Positions 29,535 through 37,433 of a stretch of 57,885 bases of DNA are shown in pieces. The notes beneath the pieces were generated by a model. The model worked only from the letters and a program-made list of their open reading frames with translations. It ran no database searches and had not been told where the DNA came from. Each line of letters begins with the position of its first letter. Within the stretch, counting starts at the first letter, position 1. The DNA lies in contig JAAPAO010000173.1 of assembly GCA_013115145.1 (NCBI GenBank), positions 1 to 57,885 of the forward strand, given 5' to 3'. The DNA comes from Perkinsus chesapeaki ATCC PRA-425 (taxonomy: Eukaryota > Protista > Perkinsozoa). A program made the translations under genes and the position numbers.

Positions 29535-31750
29535 CATCAAACATGCCTACGCACTGAGTTAGTCCGGCAATAGTGACTTGTGGTATATCCTCTTCATCAG
29601 TAATAATCCTGAGATACTAATCGATCACGTGATCGATTTAGAAATAGTTTACCTGATCTTAACGAATTTGTTTCGACTAGAATGTCGAGGCGGTGTCTTT
29701 CCGGCCACATCGCTATCGGCGACTTTGCGCGGTTTCAAACGGGAAGACTCAGCAAGTAAGGACGACCTGAAAATGTATCTTAGGTTCAAGCTTGCAGTTC
29801 ACATTCGAGCCTGAAGATACTCACTTATCGCTGGCACTTTCAAATTCATGACGGTCGCCGATTTTACGGCAGCAGCCAGCTATCGGCAAACAACACAGAG
29901 GTTTGGGCCTGAAGGAATCTTAGGTTGAACCGTGCAAGATATAAAACATGTCAAAACATGTCAACTTGTGTCGTTCACATTTCGCGAAGCTTCACAGGAA
30001 TCTCAGCTTGAAGCATGCAAGATGCGCCAGATGTTAAAACGACGCCTTTCTCACCTAACCCCGTGCCTGTCGCCTTCGTCTTCAACAACAATCAGTTTTG
30101 GCCCACATCGCGGTCCTACTTCTCCCTGACCACAAAAATCTTTGCAGTGCGAAAAGATACTCCTCACCTTCGTATCTTTTAAATCACTCACTGAGGGTTC
30201 GATAATCGGGGAGAATGCCATCTTAGAGAACAAAATCTTCAAAGTGTGGAAAGATAAAAAACAGAGACAAATCTTCACAGTGCCGAAAGATACGAAACAG
30301 TGAAAAATCTTCACAGTGCGGAAGAATACGAAACAGTGAAAAATCTTGACAGTGCAGAAGGATACGAAACAGAGAAAAACCTTCACAGTGCGGAAAGATA
30401 CGAAACAGAGACAAATCTTCACAGTGCGAAAAGATACACTTCAAACTCAACTCAGCAACATACTTTAACACACTTCCACGAAATACCTTCATACTTAATG
30501 TCAATGTAAAAAGCGCTCGCCCGATTGATCGATTATTTATTAGTAAAATAAAAAAGGAAATATATAATAATAAAGGCATGCACGTGCGGTAATCCTTTCA
30601 CCCGGGTTCGAATCCCAGCGGCGACATCAATTCAGCGACTTGGACCGTGCAGGGCGATGCATGCCAAAAATTATTATATAAAAACAGCCGATCGATTTAA
30701 TGAAACGGCTAAAAGATATAATTCGCAAATCGATCAAGTGATCGATAAATAGAAGATTAAAATTTACCTGAAAAAATATCTTTTCCCAATTTATCAAGTT
30801 TGGTTTACCTCATGAAGTTGAACGCCTCGGACGGGCGCCGGTAGTGAAAGAATCGACTAAAATCCTGAAGAAGACGGAATCGATCACGCGATCGATTATA
30901 CTTCATACTTGATGATCTGGAATTTTGAGATTTCTAATTAAGCATTCATTCGGCCTTTCGCCAGCGGGGAGATGTGTTACTAGTGCTTTAGCGTCCTCTT
31001 TAAAGGGAGTCCTCCTAATGGCAACTCTACCAGTTCTTCCTCATTGCGACTAGGGATAGATACCTCCGCAAAGATCCCAAGCGCAACGCACTGTGAAGAA
31101 TTATATAACTCTGCACGCATGCGCAATTCAGCGCCTCCCAAATGGCAACTACAGGAGCCCTTTTAGGAAAAACCTGTGAAATTGGATTCTATTTTCTAAT
31201 GAAAGATAAGCTAATCACAGACTTTGCAACTCGCAAATGTCGCAACGACTTCGTATATCAATTACATGCCAGGGGTGTCTTCCCAACACAAAAAATTTGC
31301 ACGCATGCGCATGCGGCACAATTCCAAATATGCGTTTCATTCAGCTGTTCAAAACGCGAGTTCTCGGACATGGCCACTCTGTCGGCGAGCCAATCCCATG
31401 GAAGCTCACCCACGGCGGTCTCAAACTTTTTAAAAAGGACACTAAGTCATCAAATAAGGGGACAGACTACACAATCATCTTGCACGCATGCGCAAGTGCA
31501 ACCTGTTTGAACAGATCAGAAAAATGTTGTGAATTATTTTGCGAGATTTGTCGTTGCAAAATATCTGTGAAAGTTCGACCATTTCTCGCACTGTGAAGAT
31601 TTCCGATCTTACTCGACTCGTCGTTTCTCAGTTGGTGTCCTCGCCGAATTCGATCGATTTCGAATCACCAAAGCAGGCAATCTGAACATCTCCGATCCAC
31701 TAAAAACAGATAAATACAAAAATGCCAAACATGGAACAATTTTACAGCGG
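29535..31750 (-). CDS. Hypothetical multi-exon protein (model uncertain)
   Basis: The last exons splice in phase (..HEFESASDK/SSLLAESSRLKPRK..NKFVKIR/IITDEEDIPQVTIAGLTQCVGMFDD*). Upstream exons and start are not resolved. Confidence 0.35.
30231..30438. repeat. 36-bp minisatellite with core AAATCTTCACAGTGCGAAAAGATAC
   Basis: About 6 degenerate copies plus an isolated copy near 30137-30162. It produces the spurious repetitive ORFs in the track. Confidence 0.85.
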
Positions 31751-31819
31751 AGCGTTGCATTCATCAACAACGATAACGGTCCTTCTGCTTGAAGCGAGAG
31801 ATGCATCCTAAAAGGAACA

Positions 31820-32062
31820 GTATCTTTACGCACTATAAAGATTTTATTCGGTATCTTTACGCACTATAAAGATTTAATTCGGTATCTTTAAGCACTATAA
31901 AGATTTAATTCGGTATCTTTACGCACTATAAAGATTTTATTCGGTATCTTTACGCACTATAAAGATTTAATTCGGTATCTTTACGCACTATAAAGATTTT
32001 ATTTGGTATCTTTACGCACTATAAAGATCTTATTTGGTATATTTACGCACTATAATGATTTA
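31820..32062. repeat. 31-bp minisatellite (GGTATCTTTACGCACTATAAAGATTTTATTC)n
   Basis: About 8 tandem copies read directly. Confidence 0.95.
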
Positions 32063-32962
32063 TCCCACTCACATTCAAAGAAGATCGCCTTCTCATCATT
32101 TTCGTTTTTATTTCCGCGAGGGGCAGAGTCGGCACGAAACTCGATGATGGCATTACAGATGAAAAACAGTTAACCTCAAAAATATCTTAGCGCTCCCTCA
32201 TGAGGCATATCTTAGCTTAAAGCGCGTAAGATACAGAAAATGTCACTCCCTCGCCTACTGTATACACCAGAATTTTCACGACAAAGATAAAAAATGCGAA
32301 AATAAATTTGACACGATACACACAAAACATAGTTCCGTATGTCTCTTTATTTGATGCTCGCATCAACCTAAGATTCTCTCAGAAGTAATGCACTTGATTT
32401 TCTCAGTTAAAGATGTTAAGAAAATTTCTCAACGTCTTTAAAGAAATATGTTTATATGTTTGTATATATAATTCATTTCTTAAAGGAATAATTAAAGTAT
32501 TCTTCCAACAGTGTTGTTCATCCTGCGTCACGAAAAAGGCCACGTGCTCCTAGATTGAAAGATATAATGGAAACCTGACTTCCGAAAGACTATTCCCGAA
32601 CAATTTTTCCCAAATTTTTCCGAAATTTTTCCGAAATTCTTCTGAATAAGTACCCCAGCGCTGTCCCATTCGCACAATATCAAAGCAAAGCAGTCATTAA
32701 ATTATTTCCAAAAATGTTTAAACGAATAAATTGCCCTGAAGTAATATTTCAACAGATTGCCAATTGAAATCTCAACTCAACACATTCGATCATTTTAATA
32801 CTACTAGAGCGCCGACCAGCGAAATGAAAGAATAATAACGTGCACAAACAGTAGGTCGAGCAGTGATATAAACAACGTATCTTTTATCGATCACCTGATC
32901 GATTTGAACCAGCAAAACCAATCAAACCAACTTCATCATCTCTACACAGTCTCCTTATGAAT

Positions 32963-35950
32963 TTAATACTCATCAACTGCACATTCGGGAGTCGGTTCTT
33001 CCCGCCTTTCGATCGGTTTGGTCATTTGGGGCGGAGCGGCTTCGTTGGTGAGAAGCTCGAGATCGAGTGCTCCGTCATGCTTTACAATATGCTCTGAAAG
33101 GCAGTAGCTGACCCATTATGTATCGTGCATGCTTCAACATAAGATATTTCAAGCGACACAGTTGAATAAACCGAAAAAACTAGAATAGCCTCCCTCAACT
33201 ATCAAATCGATCACGTGATCGATTATCACTCACCGAGCGATTCCGTCAACAACTGAATCTCATTTCCTAACTGCGTCAGATCAGGTTTCAACAGAAACTT
33301 CACAGACTTCATCCTGATCGAAACACAAATCGATCAACTGGGCGCGCTTTTCACTCACCAACTGTTCGCAGTTCTCCTCGTGGGAATGTTGCCAAGCGTG
33401 ACTCTCATCAAAGCCTCACGCTCATGCGGGGAATCTCCAATAGAGATAACGTTCCTCCACGACCTGAGGAAATATCTTAGCTCGAAGCGTGCAAGGTACA
33501 CAATAGCTCAACTCGTACCTATGCATAGCCGAGCTGTTCCAAAAATTAACCGCTGTGCTTGACGGTTGCTCAAGAAACTGTGGCCCACTCCCACTAACAG
33601 GCGTCGCACCTTGGAATTCATAATCGATCGCGTGATCGATTTGGATACTCACATCTCTGACCGTCAATGATATCCCTAAAAGCATGTGCCTTCCACCCCG
33701 CCGGGCTTTTTATTCCCGTATGCTCAAACGCACCTAAAATGACAACAAAATCTTGCAATCTTGCTCTTCCTTCCATTTCCTCAACGCAGAAAACCCTGTT
33801 CCGCCTACTTCTAGCACTGCAAATCTGAACTGCCAAATCTTGCAAAAGTGGCTCCAACGAGGGAAGCCATTTTCGGCAGGAAAGTTCAAACCATCCATCC
33901 TGAGGGAAAAATATTTTTCGCGGAAAAAATCTCAGTTTTTTTCTCAGGAAAAATTTATTGAATAATTTTTACATAATTTTTCCAAGAAAAAAATACCGAA
34001 ATTTAAAAAAATAATTCCGGTCAAGTAATTCAACTGTCTCCAATACTCGTCCCCAAGAAAGGAACAATTTTCCCGGAAATTTTCCGGGAAAATTTGGGAT
34101 TTTTTTTCATACCAGAAATGCTATACATCATATTTCCATGCACGCATTGAAAACATCACTTCGCGTTTCAGATTTACTTTTTTAATTTTCCAGAAATTTT
34201 CCGAAAAATTTCCGAAAATTTTCCGAAAATTTTCTGCTCACCTGCGCGTTTGTAACAATGACGACCTTCCCCAACGAAGCGGCAACGCGGACCATCTTAG
34301 CCGCCATTTCAGCGAGCTCTGCCAAAGGGTCGATGAACTGCTCAGGTACGAACGGATCGCAAACCTAAATAAATCCGTGAAACGAAACTCGCTTCGCTCC
34401 GCTAGAAAATGCTTCTCTATTGTGGATACAATGCGAAAATGAACAGCTTCGATTCGTTTTTTTCAATGGGAAAGTTGCAATGAATACACTTGCGAGCATA
34501 TAGAAATGTGCAAAACATCTCCGGCAGATTTTTAGGCGAATTCGGAACTTCTCGCGGATGTGAAAATTATTGAGAGCAGAAAGATTTCGCGGAGGTTGAA
34601 TTCCCGAAAAACAAGATTTGGCTGAACAAATTCAAGAGAGATCCAGAGCGGTTAAAGTATTAAGGGCACTGGCAGGCTCGGAAAAACTTAGGAAGAAAAA
34701 ACGCTTCGCTCCGCCTTACGTTCAATCCATTTAATTTCGCCCAAGTGGTCGGACAAATAGTATCATCCCAATCAAAGATAACCAAAGTCTGAGCTCGAGC
34801 TGGCGTGCCTGAAAGATACTTTTGAGCTCAACTTGCCTGCACCCCTTCTACTTGGTGTGGCAGCACAAGCCTCCTTCAAAGGAGTCGGAGTGGCGCCAAC
34901 TGCAGTACTGAAAAAAAAGAAATTTTTCCACGGAAAAAAATACGAAAATCACCAAGGAGGAATCTGGAATAATTTCAAAAAGGTGAAGAAATGTTTAAAA
35001 AATATATTGTAACATTCAGGGTTCAAATGAGTGAAAAATTATCACACGAATCTTAGGTTGATTCTTGCACCGAACAATCTGAAGCGATTTGAACAGCAGT
35101 AAAATTTATTAAATTTCGAAATCCTAAATGTTCGTGATCGGCGAGCCAACTTGACATTGAGAGACGTAACCCCCGGATGGCATGGGAAAGTTTTGGTAGA
35201 ATTAAACTGGCGAGAGTTCTTCCTTATTGATACCATCCAACTTTTAAAACTCCCCGCTTTACCTTCCATTTGAGATATCCCCTTCTTTCTCCTCTCCAGG
35301 TGTCATAGGTTGATCCGCGTCTTTTTCATCTCGCAAAGATTCCTTTGGTGTCATCATGACTCGACTGCGACTCTCCACATGGGGAAATGTTGCTGTGGGG
35401 AAGTCTGAGAGTAATATCGATCGTTTGATCGATTTCGAACTGACAACGTGTTATACTGCTATGTAGGCCTTTTGGAATATCGATCACGTGATCGATTCAC
35501 AGATCAATAAATTCAACCATACTGTCTCCCTAGACTTATTTTACAATATCGATTACTCGATCGATTTGCTCAACCTACAGTTATTCTGATCAGTTCTATG
35601 ATGATCCTCTCCCAGCGGACTCAACACGTCTCGACTCTCATCCTCATCACTTCCGAACACCATCGGGTCTGAATCTAACTCTAGGCATCTACGGGTACCT
35701 GAATCGATCACGTGATCGATTTAGAACAGCTAACCAAGCTAACGGCTTCGGCATATCCTAGGTCCGACCTTGCAAGACGAATAGAACTCCAATCAAAAAG
35801 GAATATAAAACATATCTTAGCTCGAAGCGTACAAGATACAAGATAGCTCAATTCCCTACCTCTCCCCGGAACAGGTGTACTCTGCTGAAGATCTTCCATC
35901 GAAATCGGTTGCTCCTCATCAATTGATTTTTCCTCGCCGGCAAACATGCA
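32963..35950 (-). CDS. HAD-like DWDDT-family protein (type seen in alveolates and oomycetes), multi-exon
   Basis: Spliced motifs in order: TLVIFDWDDTICPTTW, GKVVIVTNA, GWFELSCRKWLP, ICSAR, WKAHAF, NVISIGDSPHEREAL, KSVKFLLKP, EHIVKHDGALDL. Introns at 33610-33652, 33464-33518, 33314-33358 and 33094-33233. The 5' part (34900-35950) is micro-exonic and unresolved. Confidence 0.75.
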
Positions 35951-36018
35951 AAACCAATCACCACCCAAAACTACAAATCGATCACGTGATCGATTTCACC
36001 AAACCCAACCCATCATTC

Positions 36019-37296
36019 TCAAGAAACCTTTCCAATCCGTCTCAAAGGCGCCCGCAAACTACACTTCATCGCAGCCCACTCAGCGCGCCCTCCCTCATGT
36101 TCCCATTCAAATCTGTGCGTCGCTCCGCTAAATTGTGTTGCATGTTTCACATTTTCCTTCGACACTATCGTAACGATCGCCGACGGCATTTCCCCCAATT
36201 TTATTTTTCTAACATGGACGACTTTCCATCCTTCGACAAGCGAATCTTCCACGATTTCAACCAGATCCTCTTTTGTCAGAAGCACCTAAAAAAGCTATAC
36301 CAAATCGATCAAGTGATCGATTATTACCATAACACCCTCTCGTCTGCAAACCCTGCCAAATTCGGCCAACGTTCGCCGATAAATATCTTCCAATTTCTCA
36401 GGGTCTCCCGCGCACCATTGAACTCCAAACGGCAGGTCCGAAATTATCAAATCAAAAATATCTTTTCGGAAATTCAACCTCCGCGAATCTTCCAAGATTC
36501 CATCCACTTTCGCATCCGCAAGAAAATCCAAATTCGCCAAAAATTTCGTCATCTGTTGCCGACTAGAATCGCTTCCGATCGCCCAACTCCCTCCACTCCG
36601 CTCAAAAATCGTCGCGCCAGTTCCACAGAACGCATCCAAAACAGTCAGGTTACCAATTTCTTGCGCGCCACAAATTTCTGTTATGAACCTTGCTTGCCTA
36701 TTCATCGCCCAGGCCACAGGACCAGAGAGACCAACACATTTTCGCTCGCCCGATTGATCGATTCGAACCATCACGGGAATATCAATAATAATCCAATCAT
36801 CATTCATAAATATCCTCACCACAACCTGCGGTTTAGGGGAAACTCGCGCTTGCCACGTTTTCAACCTCTCGGGTATCATGCACGCTGCAAGCTTAGATAC
36901 GTCAAATGACGATATCGATGCGAATCTCTTCCCTTTCCTCTGAGTTTCGACCTTGAAATCGATCACCTGATCGATTTTCGCATCCATCGCCGTTCTCACT
37001 TTCTCATCGACTCCTTCCCAATCTACACCATCCAAATAATCGCGTATCTTTTCATGTGGATAATCCTCGCTTGAAGCTTCGCATAAAAGATTCAAACAAA
37101 TCTTTTCCTGCAATTTTATATCCGACTTCAATATTTCAGTCAAATCGCCATCGAAATAAATTCTCTGTCGAGGTCCGGAAAAAATTATTTTTTCCGAATT
37201 TATTTTTTCCCGGATTTCCCAAAGCGCACGCGTGCTCATTCCAACACCTGTGCTAAACGTCGAACAAAACTGCGATGTAATACGAGGAGCTGGCAT
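36019..37296 (-). CDS. THUMP-domain SAM-dependent RNA methyltransferase (THUMPD2/THUMPD3-like)
   Basis: THUMP-like FKVETQRKG..WQA..IPV, then VAWAM, motif I VLDAFCGTG, motif IV-like IISDLPFG and EFGRVCRREGVM/VLLT. The last join is a 42-nt intron at 36286-36327. Confidence 0.85.
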
Positions 37297-37433
37297 GAAA
37301 TAAAGCTAATCAAAATCGATTACGCGATCGATTTGCCCAATTATCATCAACACAAAACACTTCTCATCCAACACCTAGTAAATTTCGTTAAAAAAACATA
37401 TCCAAGCTCCAAGCATGCAAAGTACAAAATAAC

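Follow-up and report, generated by a model that had tools for sequence, protein, structure and literature searches.

Short repeated motifs that lie mostly in micro-introns and spacers of the shellfish parasite Perkinsus also occur in frame inside a coding exon, and the locus described here raises the question of whether such copies are spliced out, are former introns that became coding, or are signals written over protein codons irrespective of splicing. The stretch under analysis (57,885 nucleotides; contig JAAPAO010000173.1 of Perkinsus chesapeaki ATCC PRA-425), hereafter termed the window, was flagged in a first-pass annotation, which placed four motif families, A, B, C, and E, within an exon of a THUMP-type methyltransferase gene. 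All of these matches are present at the places proposed, and none is there by chance. The exon 1 families number from ~70 to 200 copies each genome-wide (68–203), while reversed-pattern controls returned 0. Judged by their letters, the exonic copies are genuine members of families otherwise found mostly in micro-introns and spacers. We consider it probable, though far from certain, that the motifs are cis-elements on DNA or on the nascent transcript, overprinted on codons and independent of intron identity.

The four copies reside in exon 1 of a reverse-strand gene (36328–37296; ATG at 37296), an exon of 323 codons (open frame, 333 codons). A 42-nt micro-intron on the same strand (GTAATA...TTTTAG; 36286–36327) separates it from exon 2 (36019–36285), which runs for 88 codons to the stop at 36019 and is colinear with gene model P0002 of P. 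olseni and with two orthologous loci, L001 (a Logan contig of a sister species) and L063 (P. olseni assembly GCA_013115135.1). The orthologues in these sister loci share 57–59% identity with the window gene, and the proteins of the window have orthologues labelled Perkinsus olseni at 46–59% identity. In searches and alignments, each of the two exons was treated on its own. Removal of the 42-nt intron joins ...GVM to VLLTKE..., restoring the conserved family motif G-x-x-V-L-L-T, and the intron is spliced out in model P0002. It is filled by a C palindrome at 36304–36321, and a C-bearing intron whose length differs between species occupies the same position in L001 and L063. By these comparisons, the palindrome at 36304–36321 is a true intronic copy within the same gene, which therefore carries the same palindrome twice, once in a genuine intron and once in coding sequence.

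The gene, a single copy in the 41.7-Mb assembly, is of the Trm14/TrmN/THUMPD-like SAM methyltransferase type, with a match to Pfam UPF0020 (PF01170) at 30.4 bits against a cut-off of 22.3. The Pfam THUMP model itself found no match in the exon 1 protein; a two-sequence profile search matched archaeal Trm14 (3tlj) and Trm11, with Trm14 aligning to the exon 1 protein from F-K-V-E-T-Q-R-K-G on and covering the THUMP strand and helix. Structural comparison of an AF2 model (mean pLDDT 73.9) with Trm14 chains gave a TM score of 0.61 over ~350 columns, the full length, and in the model an N-terminal ferredoxin-like plus THUMP fold is predicted to precede the Rossmann domain. Distant full-length homologues were gathered by an exhaustive profile search, giving an alignment of 12 sequences in which SAM motif I (LDAFCGTG) and motif IV (DLPFG) are invariant columns; the product is a predicted enzyme.

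Against this framework, the motif copies can be placed on the protein. The AF2 model puts A within a helix and B within a loop; C marks the junction of a loop with a strand, and E takes in a helix end and a loop. The earlier suggestion that A and B lie at normal coding positions is borne out by the 11 homologues, relative to which no length is added at C, A, or B. Alignment with the sister orthologues needs no gap at either C or B, and the stretch ahead of the THUMP F-[KR]-V strand has in Perkinsus the same length as in the shortest homologues. Two small RNA runs from the same species, compared with positions 35500–38800, gave coverage only at 35579–35620, in the neighboring gene. From the comparison with orthologues and homologues, we infer that the four segments are translated codons and neither introns nor exonized introns.

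The exonic member of family C is a 22-nt palindrome (36956–36977), for which no strand can be given because it is a palindrome. As annotated in the first pass, it reads K107-I-D-Q-V-I-D-F114 (on the coding, reverse strand); it is an exact copy and belongs to a genome-wide family. It displays every feature of that family (ATCGAT arms, a CANNTG center, and AA and TT flanks), and the 18-nt form ATCGATCANNTGATCGAT is exact at 36958–36975. The strict form of C occurs at 203 sites in the 41.7-Mb genome (reversed control, 0), and with a looser pattern 26 strand matches were counted in the window, where 0.01 would be expected. All C sites of the window (14/14) lie within 29.6–37.3 kb, a cluster also found in both sister loci. 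Among 25 C sites examined, the methyltransferase copy is the only one in a verified exon. This copy recurs at the orthologous place, with the same codons and letters, in L001 (723–744) and L063 (2095–2116). On the protein it spans a loop together with the opening residues of a THUMP beta strand (pLDDT 78–93 in the AF2 model); F114, the F of "IDF" encoded by the last letters of the palindrome, is invariant across the 12 homologues, and the amino-acid difference inside C among the three species is Q/H, at a position that varies within the family. The possibility that C is a transposon excision scar was considered and rejected, as one fixed sequence recurs at ~200 sites and persists in orthologous positions.

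Family B is represented in exon 1 by its 21-nt core on the reverse strand (36743–36763), which reads (R)-I-D-Q-S-G-E-(R) and overlies the conserved D-x-[ST]-G motif of the enzyme family, also present in Trm14. The copy matches the family core AATCGATCA-N3-GGGCGAGCG at 21/21 positions. Its reported identity to a non-coding copy on the same strand (30514–30534) was confirmed over all 21 nt, with unrelated flanks on either side, and a further 7 identical sites bring the exact genomic copies to 9 in all; at ≤2 mismatches the family has 68 genomic copies (control, 0). The 3′ extension seen most often in the family (GC-TTTTTACA-like) is missing from the exonic copy, which continues instead as AAAATGTG, nearer to a minority variant. 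It is kept in L001 with 1 mismatch and in L063 with 2, at family-variable positions, the amino-acid differences inside B among the three species being Q/R and E/G. A B-box-like word with one mismatch lies beside B and may be there by chance.

The family A unit is present in full. It begins on a codon boundary in the sense orientation on the reverse strand (36860–36900) and encodes V133–K146 of the THUMP helix. Its length is put at 41 nt because the core is followed by the 3′ tail typical of the family, 5 nt and then AGGTTGAA, and the copy has the 28-nt core, the GTATC/GATAC ends, and the tail ending AGGT(T/C) by which the family is defined. The hairpin core had been annotated correctly at 36873–36900, with a match of 25/28 to consensus; against the majority 28-mer derived here the figure is 24/28, and three of the four variants recur in other members. 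The downstream end was likewise read correctly, with ...GAGAG followed by GTTGAA as in the 35-nt A introns. Genome-wide, family A has 129 copies at ≤3 mismatches (control, 0), and the corresponding stretches of L001 and L063 contain no A within 7 mismatches. The peptide that A encodes fills the THUMP helix (residues 130–144, pLDDT 85–91 in the AF2 model) at normal length, with 16 residues against 17–18 in the sisters, whose hydrophobic pattern it shares with only ~40% of the letters in agreement.

The fourth copy, that of family E, forms part of a 50-nt patch on the reverse strand (36639–36688), and its core (36656–36673) reads I-C-G-A-Q-E-I. The core around GGCGCGC matches at 18/18 positions in the sense orientation, on the G-rich (coding) strand; the family has 4 exact copies and 111 at ≤2 mismatches genome-wide (control, 0), and no E was found within 4 mismatches in L001 or L063. 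The proposed match to a copy upstream is real, and its extent is not ~35 nt but 50 nt: the non-coding sibling (38544–38593, reverse strand) lies 1.9 kb upstream and agrees at 41/50 positions. The central 19 nt of the pair are identical (0 changes), whereas the flanks match at 22/31 positions, the 9 changes amounting to 29% divergence. Since the family consensus spans only ~22 nt, the similarity of the flanks points to a local copying event. The flanks contain N-L-x-V codons that are also present in the sisters, which suggests copying from the exon outward, and the patch as a whole argues that short-patch copying does happen at this locus. That the core stayed unchanged while its flanks diverged speaks for a core under constraint in each copy. 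That 38544–38593 might be the remnant of a duplicated whole gene was rejected, as sensitive blastn and tblastn searches matched nothing beyond the 50-nt patch.

The position of E is a Perkinsus-specific variable loop ahead of the SAM-binding strand. The first-pass estimate of about 9 extra residues holds for the three Perkinsus orthologues relative to most eukaryotic homologues; relative to archaeal Trm14 they are not longer. Both sisters have the extra loop without E, and E therefore did not bring the extra length.

Codon choice in this one gene registers the presence of the motifs. Synonymous codons were shuffled 5000 times with amino acids and codon composition fixed, and no shuffle reached the observed motif match of A, while 5, 45, and 49 shuffles reached those of B, C, and E, respectively. 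Such rare matches indicate codon choice that is tuned to the motifs, so that the comparison with synonymous-codon shuffles called for at the outset, run here for this gene, finds the motif match to exceed nearly all shuffles. Conservation across species points the same way for two of the copies. C and B occupy the same codons in all three species, and among degenerate codons with an identical amino acid, 10/10 within C and B are identical in the three species versus 44/113 elsewhere (Fisher one-sided p = 1.6e-4); beyond the motifs, identity at four-fold sites is only 35–52%. By this measure, C and B are shown to be old copies with synonymous positions under purifying selection.

This result separates motif function from intron identity. 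Were the families to act only as parts of introns, as introner relics or splice signals, codons would be expected to contain no copies, or only decaying ones; yet in three species with nearly scrambled silent sites, C and B have kept their synonymous positions. Their conservation in codons implies a function exerted on DNA or nascent RNA, irrespective of how the surrounding sequence is spliced. The claim that the motifs are overprinted regardless of splicing is supported on three counts, the segments being coding and in keeping with the lengths and fold of the homologues, their codons motif-tuned, and the synonymous sites of C and B held in three species. A synonymous change of C or B in exon 1 would alter the motif and leave the protein intact, and the locus would provide an example, from a protist parasite, of protein sequence that can be overprinted by a non-coding signal.

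A and E follow a different pattern. Among the three species they are found only in that of the window, where they are located in the two most variable stretches of the protein. Amino-acid identity makes the window species the outgroup of the three, and gain here and loss in the sisters are therefore indistinguishable for A and E, which the sister pair may have lost instead.

Several other explanations were weighed against overprinting by cis-elements. One of them, which we regard as unlikely yet deserving of attention, places the action at the level of the transcript: the motifs would be bound or folded in nascent RNA and guide nearby cis- or trans-splicing, with the exonic copies serving neighboring splice or trans-splice sites. 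Orientation bears on it in both directions. With a G-rich strand taken as proxy for the coding strand (a proxy that held for four known genes) and a sample of only ~30 loci per family, E is oriented 26:5, strongly toward the G-rich strand, a bias for which an RNA-level or otherwise directional role is no worse an explanation. In contrast, A is oriented 21:16 relative to the G-rich strand, and B in micro-introns is found 9 times in sense and 8 times in antisense, an indifference to orientation that a single-stranded RNA signal would not tolerate unless it formed a symmetric hairpin. C and A can form hairpins. Moreover, in three species, C is followed after 4–7 nt by an AG close ahead of the start codon in each of two neighboring genes. 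One such palindrome (37313–37334, again without assignable strand) is followed by TTGATTAG and then by 9 nt to the ATG, and is kept in place in both sisters, as is the C copy of the terminal intron. No tRNA gene was found in the region. Nor does it match any Rfam family, which counts against action at the level of the transcript.

It is also possible, at a level we consider quite unlikely, that the copies have no function and that those in exons are tolerated accidents, being by-products of ectopic short-patch conversion or the footprint of a mobile element. A and E are lineage-specific, as such neutral or selfish spread would predict, and the E copy belongs to the copied 50-nt patch. Exonic copies are not confined to this gene: two others, whose P. 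olseni orthologues align without gaps, carry B and E within exons of 555 and 507 codons, respectively, and neither copy is kept in the sister-species DNA, again in line with neutral spread. Some exonic copies may therefore be short-lived and functionless. The length of the spanning open frame was used only to pick these candidates, which were then checked via orthologues; as a test of coding it was discarded as unreliable, with medians of 73–108 codons and long antisense frames that arise from the strong G-over-C skew of coding strands. Functionless spread does not readily account for C and B, which stand at orthologous codons and at orthologous non-coding places in three species with four-fold sites near saturation, nor for the unchanged core of the E pair between flanks that have diverged by 29%.

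Exitron-like splicing, in which a 48-nt segment around C (36930–36977, reverse strand, in frame) or the 35-nt A unit (36866–36900, reverse strand, frame-shifting if removed) would be taken out of some or all transcripts, strikes us as distinctly improbable. Both candidates have GT and AG at family-typical places; A is a full unit like the 35-nt A introns, and C is followed 4 nt later by AAG, as ahead of several real acceptors. The 48-nt segment had been put forward as a candidate intron, a proposal that finds no backing in the comparison: its donors in the three species (GTGAGA, GTGGAA, and GTTCGA) are not conserved, the stretch has no indels and shows codon-like substitutions (GTG/GTT, AGA/CGA, TTA/TTG, GCG/GCC), and its removal would delete the invariant F114 together with the start of a confidently modelled strand. 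For A, splicing would amount to an unproductive event that lowers expression, since it leads, as had been predicted, to an early stop, here 13 codons later, and destroys the THUMP helix; in addition, the base that precedes the exonic A is C, where most sense intronic copies carry G. Exonization, the other reading offered in the first pass, by which former unit-carrying micro-introns lost splicing and became coding, is very improbable: the units are stop-free in the frames used and Perkinsus has the ~9 residues at E that most eukaryotic homologues lack, but nothing is added at C, A, or B, the E loop of ~27 nt is shorter than the shortest introns seen (35-nt A and 42-nt C), and the loop persists in both sisters that lack E and is equaled in length by Trm14.

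Returning to overprinting by cis-elements, we infer an action of the motifs at the level of DNA, and if the units are indeed DNA-level sites, the protein code is therefore overprinted by the motif. In such a mechanism the motifs would work at the level of DNA or of the nascent transcript, where sequence-specific proteins would most likely dock on them, and the perfect 22-nt palindrome of C would be well matched to a dimer. Their position relative to splice sites would be irrelevant to this action. In a compact genome, the motifs would usually come to lie where protein constraint is absent, and they would be found in codons where a segment tolerates the encoded peptide. New copies would be written by short-patch templated copying of a gene-conversion-like kind and then pass a filter of protein function, or would alternatively be reached by stepwise selection for a new site. 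For helix A, both origins are possible, patch copying with protein-level filtering on the one hand and stepwise selection on the other. A bolder proposition, which we hold to be doubtful, is that Perkinsus possesses undescribed DNA signals of ~20–40 nt that are copied by short-patch templated repair, including into codons, and are then selected. If true, a non-coding motif code would measurably shape the proteome, with loops and helices accepting peptides such as I-D-H-V-I-D.

Dual-use codons ("duons") and exonic enhancers are transcription-factor sites or cis-elements embedded in coding exons. The Perkinsus copies resemble them in that a non-coding signal laid over codons constrains synonymous sites and codon choice, as appears for C and B, and an excess of synonymous-site conservation over the element, the test applied to dual-use codons, is found for both. 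They differ in being dispersed families of nearly invariant elements of 18–41 nt that lie mostly in micro-introns and spacers. Exitrons are introns within protein-coding exons, and exon 1 likewise contains GT..AG segments, of which one has a length divisible by three (48 nt); the difference is that the 48-nt segment contains an invariant residue and that loss of the 35-nt A unit would shift the frame. Introner elements of Micromonas, Aureococcus, and Amoebophrya are inverted-repeat families that make up or fill short introns (PMC7789003). Family A recalls them by supplying GT at its first base and often AG at its end. Unlike introners, however, the Perkinsus copies occupy orthologous places across diverged species, take either orientation, and are not limited to introns but occur in spacers and exons too, and the C, A, and B copies of exon 1 add no length and create no intron. 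A literature search by terms and by literal motif strings found nothing on these motifs, and none of the papers in the library searched contains the strings. What appears to be new is the occurrence of motif families inside translated codons with conservation at synonymous sites.

Against the overprinting reading, runs of identical codons occur outside the known motifs too, for example over P-R-Q-R-I-Y and T-I-F-E-R. The locus also carries a warning for annotation, as the P. olseni gene model is visibly wrong here and motif-bearing introns are read through by ORF-based gene callers.

The 57.9-kb window has 14 C palindromes, all confined to 7.7 kb (29620-37332). This stretch contains 9 of the 203 strict copies found genome-wide; among the roughly 50 sites listed, no other contig carries as many. 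The density of C is equally high at the orthologous loci, with seven copies in 2.6 kb of the sister-species locus L001 and ten in 9 kb of L063, the P. olseni locus. The upstream C copy (window 37315-37332, L001:353-370) displays an off-consensus centre that is mirrored between the two species, reading ...CGCGTA... on the coding strand of the window vs ...TACGCG... in L001; judged from sequence, the difference resembles the outcome of an inversion, either of the element or of its centre. In the downstream gene, a contig from X1, a small same-species RNA run, matches window 35620..35579 (minus strand) and then diverges into unlike sequence. This break at 35579 is compatible with a splice junction, which would place the C copy at 35548-35565 inside a spliced intron.

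An A unit oriented antisense to the genes is conserved in all three species (window 37398-37440, L001:282-309 and L063:1623-1650), in the spacer that separates the methyltransferase gene from the upstream gene. The nearest relative of the A copy in the methyltransferase exon is found at L095 (G000:C2505:22054-22081), differing by two mismatches and displaying a similar 3′ flank, within an approximately 86-nt intron of a gene for a monothiol glutaredoxin.

Exonic copies of the other families occur in genes elsewhere. A long exon at L062:993-2657 (plus strand) carries a B copy read as A-E-S-I-T-W-A-S-A, and one at L023:338-1858 (minus strand) carries an E copy read as I-V-A-R-E-K; both belong to real genes with P. 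olseni orthologues, and neither copy is retained in the DNA of the sister species. A further E copy lies antisense in a 385-codon open frame, a candidate coding region (L016:1216-2370, plus strand), about 50 codons ahead of its TrmO_N domain.

Within the methyltransferase exon, the B copy is adjoined by a tRNA B-box-like word (10/11, window 36759-36769, minus strand) created by a codon that specifies Val here and Gly in the sisters. Five B-box-like matches were observed in the window vs 1.07 expected, and the word beside B, which has one mismatch, may be a chance match. Two runs of fully identical codons fall outside families A, B, C, and E: P-R-Q-R-I-Y (P42-Y47), followed after a two-residue gap by F-D, is shared by the window (37160-37185) and L001, while T-I-F-E-R (T229-R233, window 36599-36613) is shared by the window, L001, and L063. 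From codon identity, P42-Y47 and T229-R233 could represent additional overprinted elements.

The deposited P. olseni gene model P0002 (687 aa, L063:47-3063) merges the upstream gene and the methyltransferase and omits approximately the first 65 residues of the latter; the underlying assembly, GCA_013115135.1, contains a frame break near L063:1905-1950.
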